Under the pieces are notes generated by a model. It did no database searches. It saw only the letters and a program-made list of their open reading frames with translations, and was not told the origin of the DNA. The translations under genes and the position numbers were made by a program. A stretch of 64,000 nt of DNA from Piromyces finnis finn (taxonomy: Eukaryota; Fungi; Neocallimastigomycota): assembly GCA_002104945.1 (NCBI GenBank), contig MCFH01000010.1:868001-932000 (forward strand), in the 5' to 3' direction. Shown one piece after another: positions 451-30,953 of this stretch; positions within the stretch are counted from its first letter, which is position 1; each line of letters starts with the position of its first letter.

Positions 451-2757
451 TTATGAACTTTGGAAAAAATTCATTAGTTTAATACTTTTTGATTTAATAG
501 TATCTACTTGTTTTCCATCAACTTGATTATTTCTTAATGATTTTATTGAAATTGGAACATCCATAGTTAATTTTTGATTCATTAATTTCTTATTTAATAC
601 TTTTTGATACAATTCTACACGATCTGAAAAATTCTTTAATGATGCATTTGTTTTTATCGAATTTTGATTTTTCTCAACATTATGAATAGATTTAATATTT
701 AATGCCTCTTGATGATTAACATCTCTAATACATTTTGCTAGGGTAGAAGTCTGCAAACGCTCCTTCTTCAAATGATCTTCTAAATCCTTAGATTTATTAA
801 TAAGAATATTGATTTCCCTATTTTTTTCCATTTCTAATTTTTTATTTTCATTCTTCCAATATTCTTCTCTTTCTCTTTGTTTCTTTTCAATTAATTTTAT
901 AGATTTCTCTAAATTCTTGTTATTTTCTTCTAAAGCTTTTGAGTCTTTTTGAAGTAATTTAACAGATTTAGTCATAATTTCCAAGTTATTCTTTAAAGAA
1001 TCTTTTTCCATATATAATTCATTACATTTTTCTTTAAGTTCTCTTTCTATTTCATCACTTGCTTTTTTAACCATTTCTATCTTGTTATTGGATTCTTCTT
1101 CGGATTTTTCTTTTAATAATACTATTTTTTCTTCATAATCGACTCGAACCTTTTCAAGATATTCTATATCTTTTTCATGTTGTTTCATGAATTCCTTATT
1201 TTCTTCTTCTAATCTTTCCTTTTCTTTATTTAATTCGTCATTTTCTTTTTCACGTATATCAATAACATCCCAAAGACCTTTTACTTCTTTGGCGCTATTA
1301 ACACTTTTAGCTTTATATTTTTCAACTCTTTTCTTTACCTTGCGGTATAATTCTTCAGTTTGTTCAACTTCACCTTGTAAATTTTCAATTTGTTCTTCAT
1401 TATCTTTAATTATATCCTTCATTTTTCTGAATTCTTTTCTGAATTGACTATGTTCTTCATTTAATTTTCTCTTTTGAGTATTTACTTCTTCATTTAATTT
1501 ATCAATAGTTTTTCTTAAGCTACTGATACGATCATTTGAAAACATCAAGGCTTCATCCTTTCTTTTAATAATATTTCTCAATACTTCTAAATCTTCTTCA
1601 TTTTTCTTTTTGCCTTCACTTACACTAGCTCTAATTTCAAAAGCTAAATTTTTAAATGTTTTATTTTGAGCTTGTAAATTAGAAAATTTATCATTCATAT
1701 CTCTAATTATACTTTCCTTTTCATTTAATTTTAATTTTAACTCTTCAATAAGAGTGTCTTTAGAATCTAAAGTCTCTTTTAATTCTTGAATGGTTTGGCA
1801 ATTCTTTTCGTTTATTACAGTTGATTTTGTGTATATATCTTTGAAATATATAACTTGCTTTTGAACATCTTCCATAGAATCTATTGTTTCTTGTTCATCT
1901 TGGGATAATCCTTTGAAAAGGTCATCTAATGAATTACGATATATTTGATTTTGTTCTTGTACTTCATCAATAAATTCATCACGTATTTTAATTTCTTCTT
2001 TAAGATTTTTTATTTCATTTTGATGAATTTCTTCATCAATTTTCATTTGTTCCATCATCTCTGATAACAATTCTTCATAACTATTATCCTTTTCCCAATT
2101 CTCATTGTTTTTTTCCTCAATTTTTTTATTTAACTCGTTGATTTTTTCCTTATGTTCAACAACTTCAATTTCCTTTTCTGCTAATAATATATTATAATCA
2201 CGAATTGTTTCGTTAATAAACTCTGTTAAATGTTCTTCACATTGCTTCATATATTCAGAGTCTTTTTCAATTAAACTTATAATATTTTTATCAACAGAAA
2301 TATATTCTTCATTAAACACTCTAGATTCATTTATTGATTCATTTGTATGATCCTTAATAATATTAATTAACAATGCTTGTTCTTTTTGAAGCAATTGAAC
2401 CTTTAAGGTAAGTTTATTTAATTTTTCTTTTAGTATTAATTCATTGGTTTCTTGACCTTCCTTATTTATCAAAACATCAGTATTATTTTTGATGTTCTCT
2501 TTAATCTTATATTTCATTTCATTTTTAATATTTTTTAAAGTCTCACTAATAACAGATTTTGAAACTTGGCTTTTCTTTTGAACTGAAGAATCTGAATCAG
2601 CTAATGTACCATCTGAGTCACTTATTAAACTTGAAGAAGAGTCATATCCATTATTATCTTCAAATGTATCATGAAGATCATCTTCACAATATAATAAAGG
2701 TGACTTTTTAAATAATTTTGAATTTTCAATAAATGAGTTAACTTCAATTGTTTCCAT
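451..2757 (-). CDS. Uncharacterised long coiled-coil protein, 768 aa, single exon
   Basis: Uninterrupted 2.3-kb ORF. E/K/L-rich heptad-like composition over about residues 70-690, with an acidic Ser-rich N-terminus. No family motif recognised. Confidence 0.8.
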   Translation of the reverse strand: METIEVNSFIENSKLFKKSPLLYCEDDLHDTFEDNNGYDSSSSLISDSDGTLADSDSSVQKKSQVSKSVISETLKNIKNEMKYKIKENIKNNTDVLINKEGQETNELILKEKLNKLTLKVQLLQKEQALLINIIKDHTNESINESRVFNEEYISVDKNIISLIEKDSEYMKQCEEHLTEFINETIRDYNILLAEKEIEVVEHKEKINELNKKIEEKNNENWEKDNSYEELLSEMMEQMKIDEEIHQNEIKNLKEEIKIRDEFIDEVQEQNQIYRNSLDDLFKGLSQDEQETIDSMEDVQKQVIYFKDIYTKSTVINEKNCQTIQELKETLDSKDTLIEELKLKLNEKESIIRDMNDKFSNLQAQNKTFKNLAFEIRASVSEGKKKNEEDLEVLRNIIKRKDEALMFSNDRISSLRKTIDKLNEEVNTQKRKLNEEHSQFRKEFRKMKDIIKDNEEQIENLQGEVEQTEELYRKVKKRVEKYKAKSVNSAKEVKGLWDVIDIREKENDELNKEKERLEEENKEFMKQHEKDIEYLEKVRVDYEEKIVLLKEKSEEESNNKIEMVKKASDEIERELKEKCNELYMEKDSLKNNLEIMTKSVKLLQKDSKALEENNKNLEKSIKLIEKKQREREEYWKNENKKLEMEKNREINILINKSKDLEDHLKKERLQTSTLAKCIRDVNHQEALNIKSIHNVEKNQNSIKTNASLKNFSDRVELYQKVLNKKLMNQKLTMDVPISIKSLRNNQVDGKQVDTIKSKSIKLMNFFQSS

Positions 2758-5700
2758 TTTATTGTTTAATTAAAATTAATGTGATAATTGTATTTTCAAA
2801 AATGTTTAATTTTTCAATCTTTATTTTTAATTCTTTTTAATTAGTCTTATTTTTAAGGCCTGTCTTTTTTTAATTTTTACTTAACAACTATTTGAATTTT
2901 AGTTTACTTTTTAATTTTAATAATTTAATTTTAATGCGTTATTAGTTTTAAATTGCGATTGATAAAAAAATTTACAATATAAAAATTAAATATTTGCCAA
3001 TAATATTTTTTTAATATTATACTTGTTGTATATGAATTAAATTTGCGTATGTATTATAAAATATATTTAATTAACAGTTTCTTTTGAGATACCTACTGTT
3101 CTCAAATTATTATTAATTTTTGTAAATATCAATTTATATAGATATATAAATTAATATTATAAAATAGAATAAAAGTTTTAATTAATTCTTTATTTTAAAA
3201 TTTTATTTAATTTCAATTTTTATTATTACTCTTATATTTAATTTATTTGAATTATTGAAAATTATATTTTTTTTATTTTTAATGCTTATAATGCGTTTTG
3301 AATTAAATAACGTATGTATTTTTGCGAATTGTTTTATGATTATTTTTAATGTGTTCTTTATTATTTTTACATTTATGCTAATGAATTTTTTTATATTTTA
3401 TTAAATATATGATAAATATATATCTTTTGACTAAGTTTACATTTATGAATTATTTTAATCTCTTCATTTTTTAATTTTTCTTTGATTTAATTATCAAATC
3501 TAAATTATGATCGAAATTTACTCTATAGCAAATATGAAAAAAAAAAAAAAAAAAAAAATTATGAGTGATTTTAAAATTCTTTTATATTATTGTTATTAAA
3601 AAAAAAAACATTTTATTGTTATCTACATATTAAATTGTATATATTAATAAATTAGTAAATTAGCATTTACTATTTAGTAATTAATTATTAATATATATTA
3701 AATTATTTAGCCATATAAAAGTTTTATTTAACCAATAAAAATTAAAGTTTAATATATAAAAATTTAGATAGTTAATAATATTTTTAATTTATTAAATAAA
3801 ATCCGTTACACAATTTAGCCTTATTTATAAATTCTACTGTACAATATGGAAAAGAAATTCATTAAACATAAAATTTTTCTAATATTATTCTTAATATTAT
3901 TATCATTCATAATATATTTCATTTTAATCATATATATATAAAACAATTTAAAAAACATATATTAATTATATTGATAATAAATTATCAATAATAAACTAAT
4001 ATTAAACAATTAATTATGACACAAAAAATATATATTTATAAGCCAAAAAAAAAAATACTATATATTATATTATATATTTTTATATATAAAAATTCTTATT
4101 TTGGTAAATAATTTTATATATAATAGATATTTAATAGATTAATCAATAATTATCAATCCTATACAACTAATTTTATCTATAATATTAATAATATATTAAA
4201 ATATTATTTGGTTTTTATTACAATATATAATAATAATAAAAGTTAATTGTAATGATTATTAAATATTTTTATATTTATACTTTTGATAATGAAAAGTTTA
4301 ATTTTAAGGTATAAACTTTTTGTTTAAAAAAAAAATAGGTTGTTTATAATAACATATATAATTTATATTATGTTTATTTTTTTTTATGTTGTATATCCAT
4401 TATAATATATACGAATATATATTATAACTAAATACTTGTTTATAACTAAATAATTATAAGAAAACTATATCTTTACTGCCAACTAGTGAAATAAACCCAT
4501 AAAAAAAACCCATAAACAATATACAAAGAAATTTAGAAAATAGGATTATTTACTTTATTATACAATTTATAGGAATTATACTAGGAATATATAAAAAATT
4601 TAATTTCTAATAAATAATCAATATCAAAATCTTTTTTTTTTTAATAATTTTATTATATTGTAGTAGTAATTGTAGTATAATAATAAAAGATAATACAATA
4701 TATTTTTTTTTATATATATATTTTTTGATCCTCATCCGTTTAATATATTAATATTAAAATATTTAATTAAATTTTATTTTCAATCCCAAATTTATTTTAA
4801 CATTTTTGGTATTTTTTTGCTTTAAAAATGAATTTAATTTTTTAATTTATTTAAAAAAAAAAAAAGGTGTGTTTAGGATAATAATGAATTTTTACTATAA
4901 TAAAATAAACTTGAAAAAAAGTTTTTATTTTTTTATTATTACTCTTAATAAATAATATATATAAATGACTCTATTATTGTTATTAAAATGACTTTTTTTT
5001 TTAAATATAGTTAATCAACTATAACTTTATTTCACAGAATTTAATTAATTAGCTTTTTTTTTTTGGTTGTGGTCTTATTTTTGTTGGTCAACTAAATATA
5101 TATTGTTTTATATCATATAACGTGGTTAAATGTAAATATCATTTTACATATATTAATTAAAAAATTACTTTTTCACATTAACCTCTATATAAACAAAAAA
5201 TCGACCAAACTATATAATGAAGATAATGATACAAACACTTTTTTTAAATATATTTATATATACAAAATTCAAAAAATATTTTATTTTTGATCTGTTGGTA
5301 GTAAATCTTAAAAATCTTATAAATAATAAATTTTACTTTTTTTTTGTAAAATACACAAACAATATATTATATATTATAATATATATTATGATTAAGTTAT
5401 TTAGGTAATAGATTAACAAAACCTTTAAAATGTAAAAATCTATAACAAAATTCAACTTTACATTAATTTTTTAGCTGAGTTTTAGTAAAATAGATAAAAA
5501 AAAATAAAAAGTTTGAATAATTAAATATAAAAATTAATAAATATGCATTTATAAATAAAATTAAAATCCAGAAATTATCCTAACTATATATTTCAAATAT
5601 TTTTCAAAAATTCTTTTTTTTTTTTTTTATTCCAAAGTTCTGACAGGAGTAACGGAAGCCAAAATGACTCTATCCTTTTATTTTGTTCATTTTATTTTTT

Positions 5701-6565
5701 AATTCATATTAATTAAATTTTTTATTAATTCAGTCATTTTATTTATAAAAATGGCTTTTAGAAAACTTTCCAAATATGGGAATTTTTAATTTAATAAAGT
5801 TATTTAATTTATTTTAAATATTTCATGTCTCAAACAAAAGAATAGAATTTTTTTTTTTTTTACTCTAAAGACATGATATAGAGCAAAAAAAAAAAAAAAA
5901 ACATTTTAAAAAAGGTAACTCTTTTTAAAATGAAATAATAAAAACAATGATTAATTATGATATTTTAAAGGTTTATCAAAAATCTTATTTTAAAAATTAT
6001 AAAACGCATTGAAAAAAGTTATGATGATTTAAATAAATAAAATATTTCACTTAATAAAAATAATTTTTTTAAAAGTAAATTGTGTATATTAAAACAATTT
6101 AAAACATTACTAAATATTGGAAATTGTTTTACCTTTTATGTTATAATGGTTTCTATCGTAATAATAATATGGTTTGTATGTTTATATGAAATACAAAAAT
6201 ATGATTTTAATACTAAATTTAAAATATAATTAATATTAAATTAATGAAATATCAATATTAGTAAATGTACATATAATTAAAAATTTATGTAATAAACAAA
6301 ACAAAAATTTTATATTTTATACAATATTATTCTTTTATTATTTAATGATACATAAATAATGTATACATTATAAATAAAATTATACATAGATTAGATTAAA
6401 TTAAATTTAAAAAAAAAAAAAAAAAAAAAAGGAATTACATAATATTTCTTTTAGTATTCAATCTGTTTCTTTTATTATCCTGAAGAATAACTTCTTTTGA
6501 AATTTCAAATTAATTAAAAATATTTTTTTCATTAAAATATGTATATGTATATTAAATAATTGCCA

Positions 6566-8127
6566 ATGTCCAATAGATATTTCAATGAAATTGAATTGAA
6601 GTCTAAAATATCACAAAGCCATTTAAATACTGTTTGTCTTTGGTCTGAGAAAGAATTTATAAAAGTTTTGAAATATAATAAAAATGTACTTTTAAATTTC
6701 TTCTCCTTTTTTTTATATCTTATCATACATATTTAATAATCTGTATATTAAAATTTTGTATTAACTTTTAAATAATATAAATTATTTAAAATTAAATATA
6801 TTTTTCATTAATCTATGATTATAAAAAGAATAAAGAATTCCAGAGAATATTATTATCAAATATATATTTATCAAAAGAAAATTATTATCATTTACTTTGT
6901 AATTATAATTTTGAATTAGAAAAGGTACTAGAAATTAAATATATTTATTTAGATATCTTCAAATTTAAATAATAATAATAATAATAATATTGTTTGTTAT
7001 TATTATTATTTATTCATTTATTTATTCATTTATAATTATTTTATAATGAAATTTTCTTTTTTTTTTTTTTTTTTTTTCCTGAAAAAATTAACAATGCTAT
7101 CATTAATATATGTATAATACATTTTATAGAATGTGTATAAAATCTCAAATGTTTATTCTATATGTGATATATTTAATATTACAATAAATAAGTTACTACC
7201 TCAAATTAATAGCAATGGTAACATATATAAAATTTAAAGTAATTCTCAAATTCATTGTATTATTAAATATTCTTAATGTTTTATAATTAATTTTAATGAA
7301 TTCTACCAAGATTACAAATACTTAAAATTTCTATATTTATTTAATTCAATTGCCATTGCTAAAAGAGCAGCAGCAAAACTTATTTTAAAAAATTTTATAA
7401 AAAACAATGATTTAGACTATATAACAAACTTTCTAGATAAAGAAAATATAGATATGGTAAAAAGTTTTACAATTAATATATAAAACTTTGTGTTTAGATA
7501 CATTTTAAAATAAATAATAAAAAGTTAACATGTACTTTTCTTTTATATTTTTTAAAAAAGGAAATTATTATTAATATAGTAATAATTAATGATGAAAGAA
7601 TAGAGAATTTTCAAATGTATTTAAACCAAAGATATATAATAGAGCCGTGGAAGAGAAATGAATCTAAATATACTAATATATTATTATCATTATCACCTTG
7701 GCTAATAACCGAATTAATAAAAAAATATAAAACCCTTTTTACGCTATTATTTAGTAACTTATTAAAAGAATTATTTATAATATTTATTAAGTTAACTAAC
7801 TTTAAAGAAGGAAGATTACGCACTGTAGATTTACTTCCCATTCATAATACAAATATTTATATCGAGAATTTAGATAGAAAAAATAAATTAAAGCTTGAAC
7901 AAATTCTATGTTTAATATATCAATTTCAACAAATTAAAGAATACCAGTCTATAGTTGATTTTCACTTAAAAGATTTTATTGATACATTATATCAATATGA
8001 AAATATTCCTCAAAGTAATCAATCGAATAATTCCACTTATAATCTTAGTAATATACCAAAAGTTGACATTAAAAAAATTCAACTGATATCAAAACTTAAA
8101 TCAATATTTTTCCCAAATAACGAATAA
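6566..8127 (+). CDS. FANCF-like protein (Fanconi anaemia core complex subunit F-like), 338 aa, 5 exons
   Basis: Manual splice model: 6566-6685, 6829-6924, 7130-7217, 7311-7456, 7561-8127. All introns are GT-AG, phases are consistent, and the total is 1017 nt. SQSHLNTVCLWSEKEFIKVLKY, LLSNIYLSKENYYHLL and LSLSPWLITELIKKY resemble remembered FANCF segments (STTYVSTWDPATVRRALQW; LLENRALGDAARYHL; CALPPGLLTLVTSRH). The gene model is firmer than the family call. Confidence 0.55.
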
Positions 8128-21090: not shown

Positions 21091-22215
21091 ATGTCTAAGA
21101 CTTGGAATTTCGGAGCTGGTCCAGCTGTTATGCCACACAGCGTTTTAGTAAAGGCCCAAAAGGAACTCGTTGATTACCGTGGTTCTGGTATGTCCGTTAT
21201 GGAACTTTCCCACCGTTCCAAGGAATTCGATGACATTATTAACAATGCCGAAGCTAATCTTCGTAAGTTAATGGGTATTCCAAGTAACTACAAGGTTCTC
21301 TTCCTTCAAGGTGGTGCTACTGCTCAATTCTCCAGTGTTTTCCTTAACCTTGTTGGTGATGACATTAACAGACCATGTGATTACATGGTTTCTGGTGGAT
21401 GGTCTGACAAGGCTGCTGCTGAAGCTAAGAAGCTTGGTGCTAATGTTAATTACGTTTTCAACACTAAGTCTGAAGGTTTCACCCGTATTCCACCAAAGAG
21501 TGAATGGAAATTAAGTCCAAACGCTTCTTACCTTTACTTCTGTGATAATGAAACTGTTCACGGTGTTGAATTCCAAGAAGTTCCAAAGGTTAACTGCCCA
21601 ATTGTTTGTGATATGTCTTCCAACATTCTTTCCCGTAAGGTCGATGTTTCTAAGTACGATGTAATTATGGCTGGTGCTCAAAAGAACATTGGTCCAGCTG
21701 GTTTAACTATTGTTATCATTAAGGAAAACCTTATTGGTACCCGTCTTAACCCAAAGGTTCCATGCCCACTTTACTTAAACTACAAGACCCACGGTGCTAA
21801 CCGTTCTTTATACAACACTCCACCAACCTTCGGTATTTACATGGCTGGTCTTGTCTTCGAATGGTTATTATCTATTGGTGGTGTTGATGCTATCTCTGAA
21901 ATTAACTCTAGAAAGGCTAACCGTTTATACTCTACCATCAACAAGTACAGCAACGTTTACAAGGCTGTTGTTTCCCCAGACTGCAGATCTAGAATGAACG
22001 TTCCATTCAGAGTTATTGATGCTTCTGGAAAGCCATCTAAGGAACTTGAAGCTGAATTCCTTAAGGGTGCTGTTGCTCGTCGTATGGTCCAATTAAAGGG
22101 TCACAGATCTGTTGGTGGTATTCGTGCCTCTATTTACAACGCCATGCCAGAAGAAGGTGTTGAATTCTTATGTAAATACATGGAAGAATTCGCCAGACAA
22201 AAGGCTAAGTTATAA
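21091..22215 (+). CDS. SER1: Phosphoserine aminotransferase, 374 aa, intronless
   Basis: NFGAGPA N-terminus, ELSHRSKEF, FLQGGATAQF, DMSSNILS, the PLP-lysine motif AGAQKNIGPAG, NTPPTF and GHRSVGGIRASIYNA. Confidence 0.97.
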   Translation: MSKTWNFGAGPAVMPHSVLVKAQKELVDYRGSGMSVMELSHRSKEFDDIINNAEANLRKLMGIPSNYKVLFLQGGATAQFSSVFLNLVGDDINRPCDYMVSGGWSDKAAAEAKKLGANVNYVFNTKSEGFTRIPPKSEWKLSPNASYLYFCDNETVHGVEFQEVPKVNCPIVCDMSSNILSRKVDVSKYDVIMAGAQKNIGPAGLTIVIIKENLIGTRLNPKVPCPLYLNYKTHGANRSLYNTPPTFGIYMAGLVFEWLLSIGGVDAISEINSRKANRLYSTINKYSNVYKAVVSPDCRSRMNVPFRVIDASGKPSKELEAEFLKGAVARRMVQLKGHRSVGGIRASIYNAMPEEGVEFLCKYMEEFARQKAKL

Positions 22216-22895: not shown

Positions 22896-24497
22896 AGTCC
22901 TCCCTTTACTTTTTTCAGTCAGTAAATTCTTAAGAAATCCTAATATTCCTATTCCCTTCAAAAAGCTAGTACTTAACTCACAAGTGATTAGCAGAGTTTC
23001 ATACTTTGCACCATTACTTGGATCCAACAAAGCTAGGTCTAGAATTGCTCAGAAGCATGTTAACAAAGGAATACGATGGGTTGCCGGAGTTCATAAAGCT
23101 GTATCGTTTATATCTTTATACTCTATTTCAAAAGATTTGAATATTCCTCCATTGTCAGCCAAATGTGCGTTAGCTCAGGTTAGATGTTTTAACAAATGGA
23201 AAAACTCAAATTGTATTATCTCATACCTTGTCAATTACATTCCTAAATTTAGAAAATACACGTGGTGCAAATCAAGTAGGACACTTGATAAAAAATTAAA
23301 GAAACATGGAGATGTTAAAGCAGTTAAAAACTTTTATTGGAAAGATCTCAAAGGAAATTCAATCAAAGCGCAATATTATGATGATAATAAATTTATTGAA
23401 ACTAAAGATTTTATTAAATTATGTTATGAGTACCCAGAGTTTGCCTATGGCTTCTACTGGCTCTTGAAAGCAAGAAGCGGATACAAGTTGGATGCTAGAG
23501 TTGCCAAAGCTGCTAAATTTGTTGATCCAGTTTGTCCTAACTACTGTCCATGTTGCAAGTGTGGTGTTCAAAGTATTAAACATTGGTTATTAGATTGTCC
23601 AACATTTAGAGATATCCGTATTAAACATTATGATTCCATAGTCCAGCTACTAAATTTTTTCAGTCAACGTAATTCCAATAGTCCTATCAATAATAATGAA
23701 AATGTTAATATCAGTAGAATAGCAATAACATTAATAGTAATAGTAACAATAGTAGTAATAACAATAGTAATAGTAACAATAGTAATAATAACAATAGTAG
23801 TAATAGAAATAATAATATTAGTAATGATAACAATAGTGAAGATAATAATTCTAATTTAGATAGTAATTTAGTTAATGATAGTAATAGTTCTAATAATCCG
23901 GTGAATATTAATGTGTATGATTATTCTAGTGTGTGCAGTAAAATATTTAAATTCCTTCTTGGGGGAAGAAGTTTTAACAATATTAATTACAATTCAAGGG
24001 AATGGAAAGAACTTTGTAAGCGTCAGATTCAATCTGGTACTAACGAAGGAACACCATTCTTGACGGTAACCGCGGAACTTCTAACCAAAATCATGCCTTT
24101 TGCTATTGGCCAGCAATGGTCAATGTTCAAAAGGTTTGAAGCAACATCCAAGAGCGTCAATGCTGAAGAAACAGTAAGACAGGCCAGGAGGGCCAGCGCA
24201 ACCAATGGAGATCATAATTTTGTTCCATGACAAAATTTTGATCTTTGGCTCGGTGTCCCATTGGAAGTCAAATACAATTATTATACTTTAGTATGATAGT
24301 GGCTTTCTTACTTTAATTAAAATTACTAGAATACATTATACCCAATTTTTATTCATTTGTGTTTATTTAAACATATTTTTTTTTTATTTTTATTTTAATT
24401 TTAATTTTTTTATTACATGTATTATAATTTTAATTAAATTAATAATAAAGTTTAAAATATTTGATGCCGTTAAAAAAAAAAAAAAAGTCCTCCCTTT
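22896..24497 (+). mobile_element. 5'-truncated non-LTR retrotransposon (LINE) with poly-A tail and 12-bp target-site duplication
   Basis: Direct repeat AGTCCTCCCTTT at 22896-22907 and 24486-24497, with an A-run at 24472-24486 just before the second copy. The reading frame is open from the left TSD (LFSVSKFLRNPNIPIPFKKLVLNSQVISRVSYFAPLLG, RT-thumb-like). It includes a CX2CX8HX4C knuckle (CPCCKCGVQSIKHWLLDC). A 1-nt frameshift near 23716 joins it to the 23901-24230 frame. Confidence 0.85.
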
Positions 24498-24885: not shown

Positions 24886-25175
24886 ATTATTTATTATTTA
24901 TTTTGGTTGTATTTTATAAGAATATTTTAAAAAAAAAAAAGATAAGGAAAAAGAAAAAACTTACTTATGATATTTTAAATTATATAAAGATATAAATATA
25001 TATAAATATTAATACATGATTTTATTGCTATTTTAATTTTTTGTTATCAAGAAACTTTTTACTAATTTTAAAAAGTTTTTTGTTTTTGAATTAATTCTTT
25101 CTTTCCTTTAACTATTTTCTTGGCTTAATAATATTTACTATTATTTTTTTTTTCTTTTATCTTAACCTATATTGA

Positions 25176-25208
<33 letters not shown>

Positions 25209-25280
25209 GATGGTAATATATTTATTTTGGGGTATTTATTATTACTGTTGGTGTTGCTGTTGTTTAGAAAAAAAAATTTT

Positions 25281-28200
25281 TTAATTTCCAAGGTTTAAAA
25301 TGTCCTTAATCTTATCAGATATTTCAATATATTTGGAGGAAGCAGGTGAATCTGGATAATTATCAACAAATGGTTCACCAGCATCACAAGAATTAACAAT
25401 TCTTGGGTCTAATGGAATTGCACCTAAGAATGGAACATTAATTTCCTCACATAAAGCCTTTACACCACCATGAGTAGCTGGGAAAATAATGGATTCTCCT
25501 TTACAAGATGGACATACAAAACCGGACATATTTTCTACAATACCAAGAATTGGTAAGTTAACCTTTTTGCAGAAGTTGATTTCTTTTCTAACATCTTGAA
25601 TGGAAATTTCTTGTGGAGTAGAAATTAAAATAGCACCATCAATATCACAACCCTTTAAATATTGAACAATAGATAAATGTTCATCAGAAGTACCTGGTGG
25701 GGTATCAAATAATAATAAATCTAAATCACCCCATTCAACATCCTTTAAGAAGTGCTTAATTAAACCATTCTTCTTTGGACCACGCCAAATAACTGATTCA
25801 TCTTGCTTTTCAAGTAAGAAACCAATAGACATAACAGCCAAATTATCTTGTACATAAACTGGAGTAATACCAGTATTACTTTGATGAACTGGTTCATTTT
25901 CAGCACCCATAATAATTGGTTGACTTGGACCAGTAATATCAACATCACAAAGACCAATTTGAATATCTTCATCTCTACCTAATGTGTATGCAAGTTGAGA
26001 CGAAAGTGTACTCTTACCAACACCACCTTTACCAGAAAGAATTAAAACTTTATGTTTAACGGTTTCCATCTTCTTTTTAATAATATCTAAGTCTGGATCA
26101 ACAACAATCTTATTAGACATACAGAAAGCTCTATTTGGACATCCTTCACATGCTGAAGCTTTACCACGGTTTTCACTTTCCATTCCTGGACATCCAGAAT
26201 TTGCTTTAGCCATCTGGCATGTAGCTCTATTTGGACAATTAGCACAAGGAGAAGCATTGCCTTGATTCTTACAACAACCACCTTGTTTACCTGGACAACC
26301 AGCACATGGTGATCCTCCTTCCTTCTTACAGCATCCTCCTTGTCTACCTGGACAGCCAGCACATGGTGATCCTCCTTCCTTCTTACAGCATCCTCCTTGT
26401 CTACCTGGACAGCCAGCACATGGTGATCCTCCTTCCTTCTTACAGCATCCTCCTTGTCTACCTGGACAACCAGCACATGGTGATCCTCCTTGCATTTTAC
26501 AACAACCACCTTGTTTACCTGGACAACCAGCACATGGTGATCCTCCTTGCATTTTACAGCATCCTCCTTGTTTACCTGGACAACCACCGCATGGTGATCC
26601 TCCTTGCATTTTACAACAACCACCTTGTTTACCTGGACAACCACCGCATGGTGATCCTCCTTCCTTCTTACAGCATCCTCCTTGTCTACCTGGACAACCA
26701 CCGCATGGTGATCCTCCTTCCTTCTTACAGCATCCTCCTTGTTTACCTGGACAACCACCACATGGTGATCCTCCTTCTTTCTTACAGCATCCTCCTTGTT
26801 TACCTGGACAACCACCACATGGTGATCCTCCTTCCTTCTTACAGCATCCTCCTTGTCTACCTGGACAGCCAGCACACGGTGATCCTCCTTCCTTCTTACA
26901 GCATCCTCCTTGTCTACCTGGACAGCCAGCACATGGTGATCCTCCTTCCTTCTTACAGCATCCTCCTTGTCTACCTGGACAACCAGCACATGGTGATCCT
27001 CCTTGCATTTTACAACAACCACCTTGTTTACCTGGACAACCAGCACATGGTGATCCTCCTTCCTTCTTACAGCATCCTCCTTGTCTACCTGGACAACCAG
27101 CACATGGTGATCCTCCTTGCATTTTACAACAACCACCTTGTTTACCTGGACAACCACCACATGGTGATCCTCCTTGCATTTTACAGCATCCTCCTTGTTT
27201 ACCTGGACAACCACCGCATGGTGATCCTCCTTCCTTCTTACAGCATCCTCCTTGTTTACCTGGACAACCACCGCATGGTGATCCTCCTTCCTTCTTACAG
27301 CATCCTCCTTGTTTACCTGGACAACCACCGCATGGTGATCCTCCTTGCATTTTACAACAACCACCTTGTTTACCTGGACAACCACCACATGGTGATCCTC
27401 CTTCCTTCTTACAGCATCCTCCTTGTTTACCTGGACAACCACCACATGGTGATCCTCCTTCCTTCTTACAGCATCCTCCTTGTCTACCTGGACAACCACC
27501 ACATGGTGATCCTCCTTGCATTTTACAACAACCACCTTGTTTACCTGGACAACCACCACATGGTGATCCTCCTTCCTTCTTACAGCATCCTCCTTGTTTA
27601 CCTGGACAACCACCGCATGGTGATCCTCCTTCCTTCTTACAGCATCCTCCTTGTTTACCTGGACAACCACCGCATGGTGATCCTCCTTCCTTCTTACAGC
27701 ATCCTCCTTGTTTACCTGGACAACCACCACATGGTGATCCTTCTTCCTTCTTACAGCATCCTCCTTGTTTACCTGGACAACCACCACATGGTGATCCTCC
27801 TTCCTTCTTACAGCATCCTCCTTGTCTACCTGGACAACCACCACATGGTGATCCTCCTTGCATTTTACAACAACCACCTTGTTTACCTGGACAACCACCA
27901 CATGGTGATCCTCCTTCCTTCTTACAGCATCCTCCTTGTTTACCTGGACAACCACCACATGGTGATCCTCCTTGCATTTTACAGCATCCTCCTTGTTTAC
28001 CTGGACAACCACCGCATGGTGATGATTGTTGTTCCTTTTGTGGAATGGAAGATTCACTTTCTTCTTTAATATCTATATCCATTGAATTTTGATCTTGTTT
28101 TTCAGTAACTGTCATCATAGCATTCTTTTTACAACAACCACCTTGTTTACCTGGACAACCACCACATAATGATCCTTCCTTCTTACAACATCCACCTTGT

Positions 28201-28679
28201 TTACCTGGACAGCCACTGCATGAAGATCCTCCTTCCTTTTTGCAGCACCCACCTTGCTTACCGGGGCAACCTCCACATCCTTGTCTTTTTGGACAACCAC
28301 TACAAGGAGATGATTGTTGTTCTTGTGAAATTGAAAAAGTCTGACTTGTATTTTCAGTAGCTGTATTCATCATAGCTGCACGCTTTTTACAACAACCACT
28401 ACATCCTTGTTTTTTTGGGCATCCGCCACATGGTGATGATTGACCTTGTTCTATTGATGATTCTTGTCTTTCTGCACGTCTTTTACAACATCCGCCACAA
28501 CCGCTTTTACCAGAGCATCCACCTTTTTGTTGTTCATTACTAACTACATTCATTTCTACATCATTTATTTCTTCATTATCTTTACAACATCCTTTTTTAG
28601 TATCACTGGAAATATCTTCATTGTTTCCATTTACATTATTTTCTGAAAATTTATTAATTTCTTCTTGATTATTATTCAT
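25281..28679 (-). CDS. NBP35: Cytosolic Fe-S cluster assembly scaffold NBP35/NUBP1 (Mrp/NBP35 P-loop ATPase) with a very large Cys-rich N-terminal repeat extension, 1132 aa, intronless
   Basis: The C-terminal ~300 aa have the Nbp35-specific CX13CX2CX5C motif ([24 protein letters not shown]), deviant Walker [43 protein letters not shown] and [11 protein letters not shown] (bridging CPXC). All of this is in one frame with the repeat array. Confidence 0.93.
26256..28022 (-). repeat. Coding minisatellite: 31 x 57-bp units encoding SPC(G/A)GCPG(K/R)QGGCCK(KE/MQ)GG
   Basis: The 57-nt period is visible as a 3-nt offset per 60-nt line. 31 units were counted in the translation, and 31 x 57 = 1767 nt matches 26256-28022 exactly. 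The last unit ends ...CCKNQGN. Confidence 0.95.
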
Positions 28680-28865
28680 TATTTAATAGATTAAATATAT
28701 ATTCCAAAAAAAAAAAAAAAAGAAAATAAATTAAATTATCTTAAATGCTTAATTAAAAATGTTATAAATATATAATATATAATATATAATATATAATATA
28801 TAAGAAAATTATAATATAAATATATAATTTATGCAAATAAAGAAAAAATATAATTATTTAATTAG

Positions 28866-30362: not shown

Positions 30363-30953
30363 TTAATTGCAAGAGCATCCACAACCACAAGAAGTCTTTA
30401 CACAACCAGCACACATTTGGCCTGGTTTACATGGGCACTTTCCTTCAGCATCTCTGCATGGACAATCAGTTGGACAATCACAAGCCTTCTTTTCTTCTGA
30501 GCATCCACACTTTTTAGTAGTAGAACAACCACAACCACATCCTTCAGCATTTACACAACCAGCGCACATTTGACCTGGTTTACATGGACACTTTCCTTCA
30601 GCATCTCTGCATGGACAGTTTGGTGGACAATTACAAGCCTTCTTTTCAGAAGTGCAACCACAGCCACAACCACAAGAAGTCTTTACACAACCAGCACACA
30701 TTTGGCCTGGTTTACATGGGCACTTTCCTTCAGCATCTCTGCATGGACAATCAGTTGGACAATCACAAGCCTTCTTTTCTTCTGAGCATCCACACTTTTT
30801 AGTAGTAGAACAACCACAACCACATCCTTCAGCATTTACACAACCAGCACACATTTGACCTGGTTTACATGGACACTTTCCTTCAGCATCTCTGCATGGA
30901 CAGTTTGGTGGACAATTACAAGTCTTCTTTTCAGCGGAGCAACAATCACACAT
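30363..30953 (-). CDS. Long modular metallothionein-like protein, 196 aa, 53 Cys, four modules (A-B-A-B)
   Basis: 27% Cys in CxC, CC and CxxC clusters. No F, W, Y, H, L or I and no signal peptide. Four copies of EKKxCxCPxxCPCRDAEGKCPCKPGQMCAGCV, with a near-exact 285-bp internal duplication. Confidence 0.82.
   Translation of the reverse strand: MCDCCSAEKKTCNCPPNCPCRDAEGKCPCKPGQMCAGCVNAEGCGCGCSTTKKCGCSEEKKACDCPTDCPCRDAEGKCPCKPGQMCAGCVKTSCGCGCGCTSEKKACNCPPNCPCRDAEGKCPCKPGQMCAGCVNAEGCGCGCSTTKKCGCSEEKKACDCPTDCPCRDAEGKCPCKPGQMCAGCVKTSCGCGCSCN

Follow-up and report, generated by a model that had tools for sequence, protein, structure and literature searches.

The gene described here lies in a 64,000-nt stretch of the Piromyces finnis genome (contig MCFH01000010.1, positions 868,001 to 932,000; hereafter the window) and encodes a known scaffold ATPase, Nbp35, carrying a previously undescribed, self-derived domain of tandem cysteine modules. 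A single intronless open reading frame (ORF) on the minus strand, 25281..28679 of the window, specifies this extended Nbp35 of 1132 aa and 112 kDa. Altogether, the data make it very likely that the N-terminal tail is a genuine, translated and selected domain, shared by the whole lineage of anaerobic gut fungi. We further consider it probable that the protein is an Nbp35 orthologue whose tail, derived from its own motif, binds clusters or metal. Nbp35 is an essential and highly conserved eukaryotic protein, and a phylum of strict anaerobes has multiplied its N-terminal motif (~10 to ~37 copies) under selection, a natural experiment on what the N-terminal cluster motif of Nbp35 does.

A complete Nbp35 joined to a cysteine-rich extension

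Residues 874-1124 match PF10609, the NUBPL/Mrp/NBP35 ATPase family (Pfam, E 3.1e-93, 312 bits against a cut-off of 27.1). The nearest solved structure is that of Chaetomium CFD1 (PDB 6g2g, E 3e-67). In a multiple alignment (alignment A1), the domain shares 58-64% identity with Nbp35 from fungi, plants and animals. The deviant Walker A sequence GKGGVGKS and the switch region form invariant columns of this alignment, as do all four cysteines (C830, C844, C847 and C853) of the N-terminal CX13CX2CX5C motif; the C-terminal CPXC motif is represented by CPSC at aa 1056-1059. The CX13CX2CX5C motif sets Nbp35 apart from Cfd1/NUBP2. It "tightly binds" a [4Fe-4S]2+ cluster that is needed for cytosolic Fe-S assembly (CIA), in a role described as "not well understood" (PMC10108433). 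By these signatures the gene is identified as the NBP35 orthologue of anaerobic gut fungi, encoding the CIA scaffold ATPase with its core and both canonical cluster sites intact. An initial annotation made from the DNA alone had proposed that one intronless frame joins a complete Nbp35 to a Cys-rich N-terminal extension, and the 1132-aa ORF, the PF10609 match and the two motifs bear this out.

The length of the protein departs from that of a single-domain Nbp35 (~310-350 aa; 311-345 aa among orthologues outside the anaerobic fungi). The N-terminal extension accounts for 825 aa and holds 152 of the 163 Cys residues of the protein, 151 of them before aa 820. It is rich in Gly, Cys and Lys (29% Gly and 18.4% Cys), contains no His and has two aromatic residues in its entire length. 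Its cysteines are arranged in 39 CxxC pairs and 37 CC doublets, and the signature CxxCP occurs in 37 copies.

Structure and origin of the repeat array

Tandem Repeats Finder reports a 57-nt period repeated 30.8 times between 26266 and 28023, with 93% matches and 0% indels, and a second, weaker array of the same period (2.8 copies, 28125-28278). The main array can be read as head-to-tail modules of four cysteines, C-X7-C-X2-C-X6-C, connected through the CC doublet, each with a net charge of about +2. The figure of 31 units and 124 Cys given in the initial annotation holds only if a degenerate 21-aa unit is included; the exactly regular units number 30 (aa 232-801). The additional cysteines it placed in degenerate units nearer the N-terminus are there, but in irregular units spanning aa 31-231 and in a number closer to 27 than to 25. 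Its description of Cys and Gly as invariant is correct for all 120 Cys codons, but one Gly position alternates between G and A (10/30 units) and one unit has a G to E change. The irregular units of aa 63-231 are homologous to the long-period units found in other species.

At the DNA level, the array is composed of 16 distinct unit variants in non-periodic order, with multi-unit block duplications at lags of 6 and 9. This mixed order and the block duplications look like natural array growth and not like assembler stutter.

A sequence gradient can be read directly at the C-terminal end of the array, from the last three cysteines of the canonical motif, through the degenerate unit, to the regular unit SPC[GA]..., the degenerate segment being intermediate between repeat unit and canonical motif. 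The SPCANCPNR sequence next to the canonical motif is kept in 7/7 anaerobic-fungus sequences of alignment A1. Because of this gradient of three sequences, we interpret the array as a serial duplication of a segment of Nbp35 itself: the extension arose when the CX2CPX5C part of the N-terminal [4Fe-4S] motif was duplicated again and again in frame. It turns over by duplication of units and of blocks, while selection keeps the pattern of Cys, Pro and Gly residues. An origin of the unit in CX2CPX5C favours an Fe-S-type site over a generic metallothionein.

Evidence that the array is coding and under selection

The initial annotation stressed that no stop or frameshift occurs across 1.77 kb. This is true, but it is weaker evidence than it sounds, since two further frames are also open across the array (ORFs of 656 and 587 aa). 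Any stop-free unit whose length is a multiple of three remains open when repeated, and an open frame by itself therefore proves little. More telling is the distribution of variation among the 30 units. Out of 13 variant sites, 8 are synonymous and 5 non-synonymous, where a synonymous share of only 0.23-0.27 would be expected (p 0.003-0.009). None of the variants alters a Cys codon, the non-synonymous ones being K/M, E/Q, G/A, K/R and a single G/E.

Base composition adds to this picture. The GC content of the region is 43-50% (0.49 in the array), as compared to 11-16% in the flanks and ~32% in the part coding for the ATPase. The GC content of third codon positions (GC3) is nearly the same in the array (0.15) as in the ATPase domain (0.16), while first and second positions of the array reach 0.58 and 0.75, respectively. 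Since GC3 is genome-like, the high GC of the array can be ascribed to Gly, Cys and Pro, imposed against the AT bias, with silent sites following the genome. The array is in frame at both of its junctions, that with the conserved leader and that with the Nbp35 motif. Inside the extensions of six orthologous loci, Tandem Repeats Finder detected 34 tandem-repeat periods (12 to 291 nt), every one of them divisible by 3. Together with the conservation across species (below), the excess of synonymous changes, the host-like GC3 and the two in-frame junctions show that the array is coding. Selection on the array protein, as the initial annotation had suggested, is thus supported by the 8 to 5 ratio of sites, the absence of any Cys change, GC3 and conservation.

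The extension is found throughout the anaerobic fungi sampled

Homologous Cys-rich extensions were present in 8/8 anaerobic-fungus Nbp35 loci recovered, namely two paralogues of Neocallimastix californiae (L002 and L087), one locus each from N. lanati (L083), Anaeromyces robustus (L085) and Piromyces sp. E2 (L086), and three metagenomic contigs. No tail-less Nbp35 was found in any anaerobic fungus searched; for this reason, the extended protein is presumably the working copy of Nbp35. A search with the ATPase part returned three anaerobic-fungus clusters at 94% identity, followed by Gonapodya at 66% (315 aa, without extension), and Gonapodya and other aerobic relatives all have proteins of 311-345 aa lacking the extension. 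The leader of the window, M..N.E...KRNNE..SND.KKVCC.., can be aligned with those of L001, L003, N. californiae and A. robustus. In L001, one of the metagenomic loci, the gene is an intronless 1011-aa ORF interrupted by a scaffold gap. The tail is therefore a feature of the anaerobic gut fungi as a lineage and not a peculiarity of the P. finnis genome, and it was in place already in the common ancestor of the sampled Neocallimastigomycota.

The make-up of the extension varies among lineages. A short unit of 19 aa is shared by the window, Piromyces sp. E2 and N. californiae paralogue B; N. lanati and its N. californiae paralogue have one of 17 aa, and L001 and L003 one of 20 aa. Composite long units of 53-97 aa have been amplified in some lineages, and the number of Cys in the extension ranges from 57 to 152 across loci. 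With 31 short units, the window has the largest array, as against no more than 8 elsewhere. A survey of the extension and its copy number across the phylum, proposed in the initial annotation, thus finds the former in all eight loci and the latter widely variable.

The public gene models examined are truncated or split (Table 1), which is why comparisons based on proteomes missed the tail; the annotations of N. californiae (both paralogues), N. lanati (one model), A. robustus and Piromyces sp. E2 need correction. Models P0277 and P0280 also lose the first Cys of the canonical Fe-S motif. In Piromyces sp. E2, ~2.3 kb of N (L086 ~3700-5950) occupy exactly the place where the leader and most of the extension are expected, a gap consistent with a long array beyond the resolution of short reads.

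The intron content of NBP35 differs markedly within this one phylum, in spite of proteins that are 86-94% identical. No introns interrupt the gene in the window, L001 or Piromyces sp. E2. In Neocallimastix, the region coding for the ATPase contains ~8-9 short AT-rich introns, and the span of the Anaeromyces gene points to introns as well.

Searches for relatives outside the lineage

An exhaustive HMMER search with aa 1-830 against 1.84 billion representative sequences gave 35 matches. Among the six inspected, the true relatives were P0241 and P0247, both exon-1 fragments from anaerobic fungi; the other four were unrelated repeat proteins. Pfam searches with the array and leader returned no match up to E = 10, metallothionein families included, and a feature search of the ESM Atlas with aa 612-830 reached a best score of 0.61, an uninformative value. 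The unit is also distinct from the DnaJ-type zinc finger CXXCXGXG, as it reads CxxCxGxxG and has no Pfam match. A homologue search confined to long proteins yielded nothing but chimeric or merged models of ordinary Nbp35 (P0002-P0006 inspected), none with a Cys array. Searches of the literature yielded nothing relevant on Nbp35, CIA or metallothionein in anaerobic fungi. Judged by these comparisons, the extension belongs to no described metallothionein or zinc-finger family; nor is such an Nbp35 architecture, for which the initial annotation knew no precedent, described in the literature and databases searched.

Expression and translation start

Three sequencing runs that carry the label RNA (a guessed label) each contain two contigs, which cover the two ends of the gene. 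One (25220-26298) takes in the 3' end and the entire ATPase domain and reaches the first repeats; the other (28182-28692) comprises the ATG, the leader and the early units. Depth in run X1 is similar at the two ends, 197 for the ATPase-side contig and 224 for the ATG/leader contig, and intergenic bins at 24950-25203 are empty in the same run. No splice joints were seen in the RNA contigs over either end of the gene. Some bins inside the array have zero depth because repeated words were placed only once; of the 31-mers sampled, ~75% were recovered from independent RNA and DNA runs.

No ATG occurs within 300 nt upstream of the start codon of the extension. In N. lanati, the structure of the transcript can be followed further. 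A 1.9-kb contig, L004, is ~100% identical to the gene in L083 and has nine introns (GC 4-11%, mostly GT..AG) removed; since these AT-rich introns are absent, L004 represents a mature mRNA. It has an ATG-free 5' untranslated region with an in-frame upstream stop, followed by one ORF that runs from the Cys repeats into the ATPase domain. The same 525-aa ORF, its ATPase part uninterrupted, is carried by L089, which by its sequence looks like an mRNA contig too. A further contig, L003 (2.9 kb), has an ORF of 806 aa.

The initial annotation had pointed to the Met in QMAKANSGC, just before the canonical motif, as a start site that would bypass the array. As a conserved mechanism, internal initiation at this residue is ruled out, the Met being missing in two Neocallimastix paralogues. 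With no ATG upstream of the extension and with an N. lanati mRNA that joins repeats and ATPase, this route is unlikely. The best explanation is that one protein of ~112 kDa is made from the first AUG; taken jointly with a metal or cluster reservoir role for the tail, this account is a probable one.

Proposed function and alternative explanations

We envisage the tail as a polythiolate that would be intrinsically disordered. Its 19-aa modules, with four thiolates and a charge of about +2 each, would hold Fe-S clusters or, with less specificity, ions of Fe, Zn or Cu, and so equip the CIA scaffold with a large reservoir or buffer of its own for clusters or metal. By our own charge arithmetic, the two basic residues of each module would offset the -2 of an [Fe4S4(Cys)4] or Zn(Cys)4 centre. 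Such a reservoir would be plausible only in a permanently anoxic, reducing cytosol, and the tail would have arisen on the same branch as the anaerobic habit of these fungi; it may reveal a principle of Fe-S or metal storage specific to anoxic cytosols. The parts of this proposal differ in strength. That the tail binds metal or clusters of some kind is likely. Specific binding of Fe-S is plausible, if somewhat short of probable. The boldest version, in which every 19-aa module would hold its own Fe-S cluster and tens of clusters would form a "cluster capacitor" or assembly line ahead of the scaffold, is doubtful. If true, it would represent the first Fe-S storage or multi-site assembly domain in CIA and a natural poly-[Fe-S] polymer, one possible only in a permanently anoxic cytosol and invented at the shift to anaerobic life.

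Several observations weigh against this account. The spacing between CC and CxxC varies among species (units of 17, 19 and 20 aa), a variation that suits a loose metal-thiolate binder at least as well as a defined [4Fe-4S] site, and short units number from ~3 to 31 among loci, indicating that the dosage of modules is not tightly constrained. The A. robustus extension has two 1-nt frame shifts (L085 ~2090-2230), which the split of its public model follows, one of them placed at a missing A in a (CAAACT)n run, with Cys-rich coding intact in the new frames. These shifts may be long-read errors, or else real and very recent lesions, the tail being dispensable in that species. The length of 31 copies in the window is unspanned, as short-read contigs break inside the array. 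An AlphaFold2 model of five units with the ATPase domain, built on a shallow alignment and mute on the holo form, assigns the array no secondary structure and a predicted local distance difference test score (pLDDT) of 33-38, a value that signals the lack of a confident fold and may not be read as proof of disorder.

The tail might instead act as a metallothionein-like sink for Cu(I), Zn and Cd, shielding nascent clusters or aiding general detoxification. A Cys content of 18-21%, the CC and CxxC motifs, Lys beside Cys, the lack of His and the near absence of aromatic residues are all as expected from such a protein, and so is the variable Cys spacing; modular expansion is well documented for metallothioneins (PMC8476144, PMC12508003). 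In addition, a modular metallothionein-like gene lies directly upstream in the same orientation, an adjacency kept in L001 and in N. lanati (L083/L084). However, the neighbour is missing from this position in N. californiae L002, and its presence elsewhere may be plain synteny, given that a downstream aminotransferase gene is conserved too. Moreover, the unit copies a [4Fe-4S]-binding motif and keeps the CxxCP signature in 37 copies. The tail resembles metallothioneins in Cys content and motifs, but it matches no metallothionein family in Pfam and, being fused to an ATPase, is no small stand-alone protein. On balance, we regard a sink of this kind as unlikely.

It is improbable, in our judgement, that the tail is simply a tolerated low-complexity expansion, that is, a near-neutral repeat inflated by slippage or unequal crossing-over, with frameshifts and aggregation as the sole targets of counter-selection. 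Species and paralogues do differ strongly in copy number and unit type, the 93% internal identity and the block duplications at lags 6 and 9 indicate recent turnover, and A. robustus may carry frame shifts. Yet the tail occurs in 8/8 anaerobic-fungus loci and is absent from the sampled aerobic relatives, its Cys/Pro/Gly pattern is kept across genera despite an extreme AT bias (GC 0.49 in the array, 0.11-0.16 in the flanks), and synonymous changes are in excess. Least probable of all is an artefact, whether through misassembly of the 31-unit length or through an internal promoter or initiation site that bypasses the array in vivo. The breaks of short-read contigs inside the array, the bins of zero depth and the limit of 8 short units in other long-read genomes would suit such an account; the 16 unit variants in non-periodic order, the block duplications and the lack of a single indel do not, nor does the recovery of ~75% of sampled 31-mers from independent RNA and DNA runs. 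An internal start is further countered by the similar expression of both flanks, the absence of an upstream ATG and of a conserved internal Met, and the presence of repeats in the mRNA contigs of relatives. A cluster or metal reservoir attached to the CIA scaffold remains our preferred interpretation.

Feature coordinates and neighbouring genes

Table 1. Parts of the extended NBP35 gene in the window and Cys-rich coding regions at orthologous loci, with the evidence or the public gene model concerned.
Sequence	Position	Strand	Feature	Evidence	Public model
Window	25281..28679	-	Complete coding sequence of extended Nbp35	ORF and Pfam	
Window	28494..28679	-	Asn/acid-rich leader, aa 1-62, with first CC doublet, from first ATG	Aligned leaders; RNA contig 28182-28692	
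Window	27987..28493	-	Irregular composite Cys-rich units, aa 63-231: CCKRRA..spacer.. composites and three short units	Repeat scan, direct reading	
Window	26277..27986	-	Regular array, aa 232-801: 30 x 19 aa, CCK[KM][EQ]GGSPC[GA]GCPG[KR]QGG	Repeat scan, direct reading	
Window	26214..26276	-	Degenerate 21-aa transition unit, aa 802-822	Direct reading, alignment A1	
Window	26121..26192	-	Canonical Nbp35 N-terminal [4Fe-4S] motif CX13CX2CX5C (C830, C844, C847, C853)	Direct reading, alignment A1	
Window	25308..26060	-	Mrp/NBP35 P-loop ATPase domain PF10609, aa 874-1124	Pfam, 6g2g match	
Window	26010-26033	-	Walker A GKGGVGKS	Alignment A1	
Window	25503..25514	-	CPSC motif, which in this family holds the bridging labile [4Fe-4S] cluster	Alignment A1; role from PMC10108433	
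L002, N. californiae	4894-6624		576-aa Cys-rich exon-1 ORF		P0123 (484 aa), starts at internal Met
L087, N. californiae, second paralogue	2698-3960		420-aa Cys-rich exon directly upstream		P0280 (299 aa), named "nbp35"
L083, N. lanati	4596-5858		Same 420-aa exon as L087		P0122 (517 aa), starts inside exon at internal Met
L086, Piromyces sp. E2	6173-7903		576-aa ORF running back into N gap		P0277 (300 aa)
L085, A. robustus	1422-3333		~1.9 kb of Cys-rich coding sequence upstream		Split: P0281 (344 aa) and a separate 278-aa "gene"

The metallothionein-like gene directly upstream of NBP35 (30363-30953, minus strand, co-oriented) encodes 196 aa, starting with MCDCC.. and organized in four modules (..CNCPPNCPCRDAEGKCPCKPGQMCAGC..), and matches no Pfam family. 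Similar sequences are present at L001 1-201, L083 1501-2049 and L084 1503-2045, with 54-87% identity by tblastn; none was seen within 4.9 kb upstream in N. californiae L002.

On the other side of NBP35, a 374-aa ORF at 21091-22215 (plus strand) reads by its sequence like a phosphoserine aminotransferase. A PF00266 gene of the same length (374 aa) lies downstream of NBP35, in convergent orientation, in A. robustus and Piromyces sp. E2; its occurrence beside NBP35 in several genera indicates that local synteny is conserved. The idea that this PF00266 gene might be the cysteine desulfurase of an Fe-S gene cluster was rejected on account of the aminotransferase-like reading of the window ORF. Between the aminotransferase gene and NBP35, the interval 22984-24230 (plus strand) contains ORFs of 291 and 109 aa. 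The 109-aa ORF shares the motif ..GQQWS.F.RF....KSVNAEETVRQA.RASATN.DHNFV with an ORF upstream of N. lanati NBP35 (L083 2528-2830) and, more weakly, with a sequence in Piromyces sp. E2 (L086 3219-3548); the motif is probably a dispersed repeat or the remnant of a mobile element.

Comparison with known systems

In its core, the window protein has all the traits of Nbp35/NUBP1: PF10609, the deviant Walker A, the N-terminal CX13CX2CX5C and the C-terminal CPXC. Unlike these proteins of ~311-345 aa, it adds 825 aa that have no counterpart outside Neocallimastigomycota. That the Mrp/NBP35 family accepts additional cofactor-binding domains is illustrated by fusions such as bacterial MrpORP (PMC6345978), although these add folded domains from other families and not a tandem array of their own motif.

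Modular metallothioneins of fungi, snails and tunicates share with the tail the tandem arrangement of Cys-rich, aromatic-poor modules in lineage-specific copy number (PMC8476144, PMC7084494, PMC12508003). They differ in being stand-alone proteins, whereas the modules described here are joined to an ATPase, go back to an Fe-S motif and have no metallothionein Pfam match. The closest functional analogy is with HypB of Bradyrhizobium and Rhizobium, which is likewise a P-loop NTPase metallochaperone with a low-complexity N-terminal tail offering multiple ligand-binding sites. The His-rich N-terminal tail that some of these NTPases carry binds several Ni ions, and a role in nickel storage or buffering has been proposed for it (PMC7055735). 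HypB is bacterial, its tail is rich in His (17-24 His as opposed to ~150 Cys) and its cargo is Ni, and the tails of the two proteins are non-homologous.

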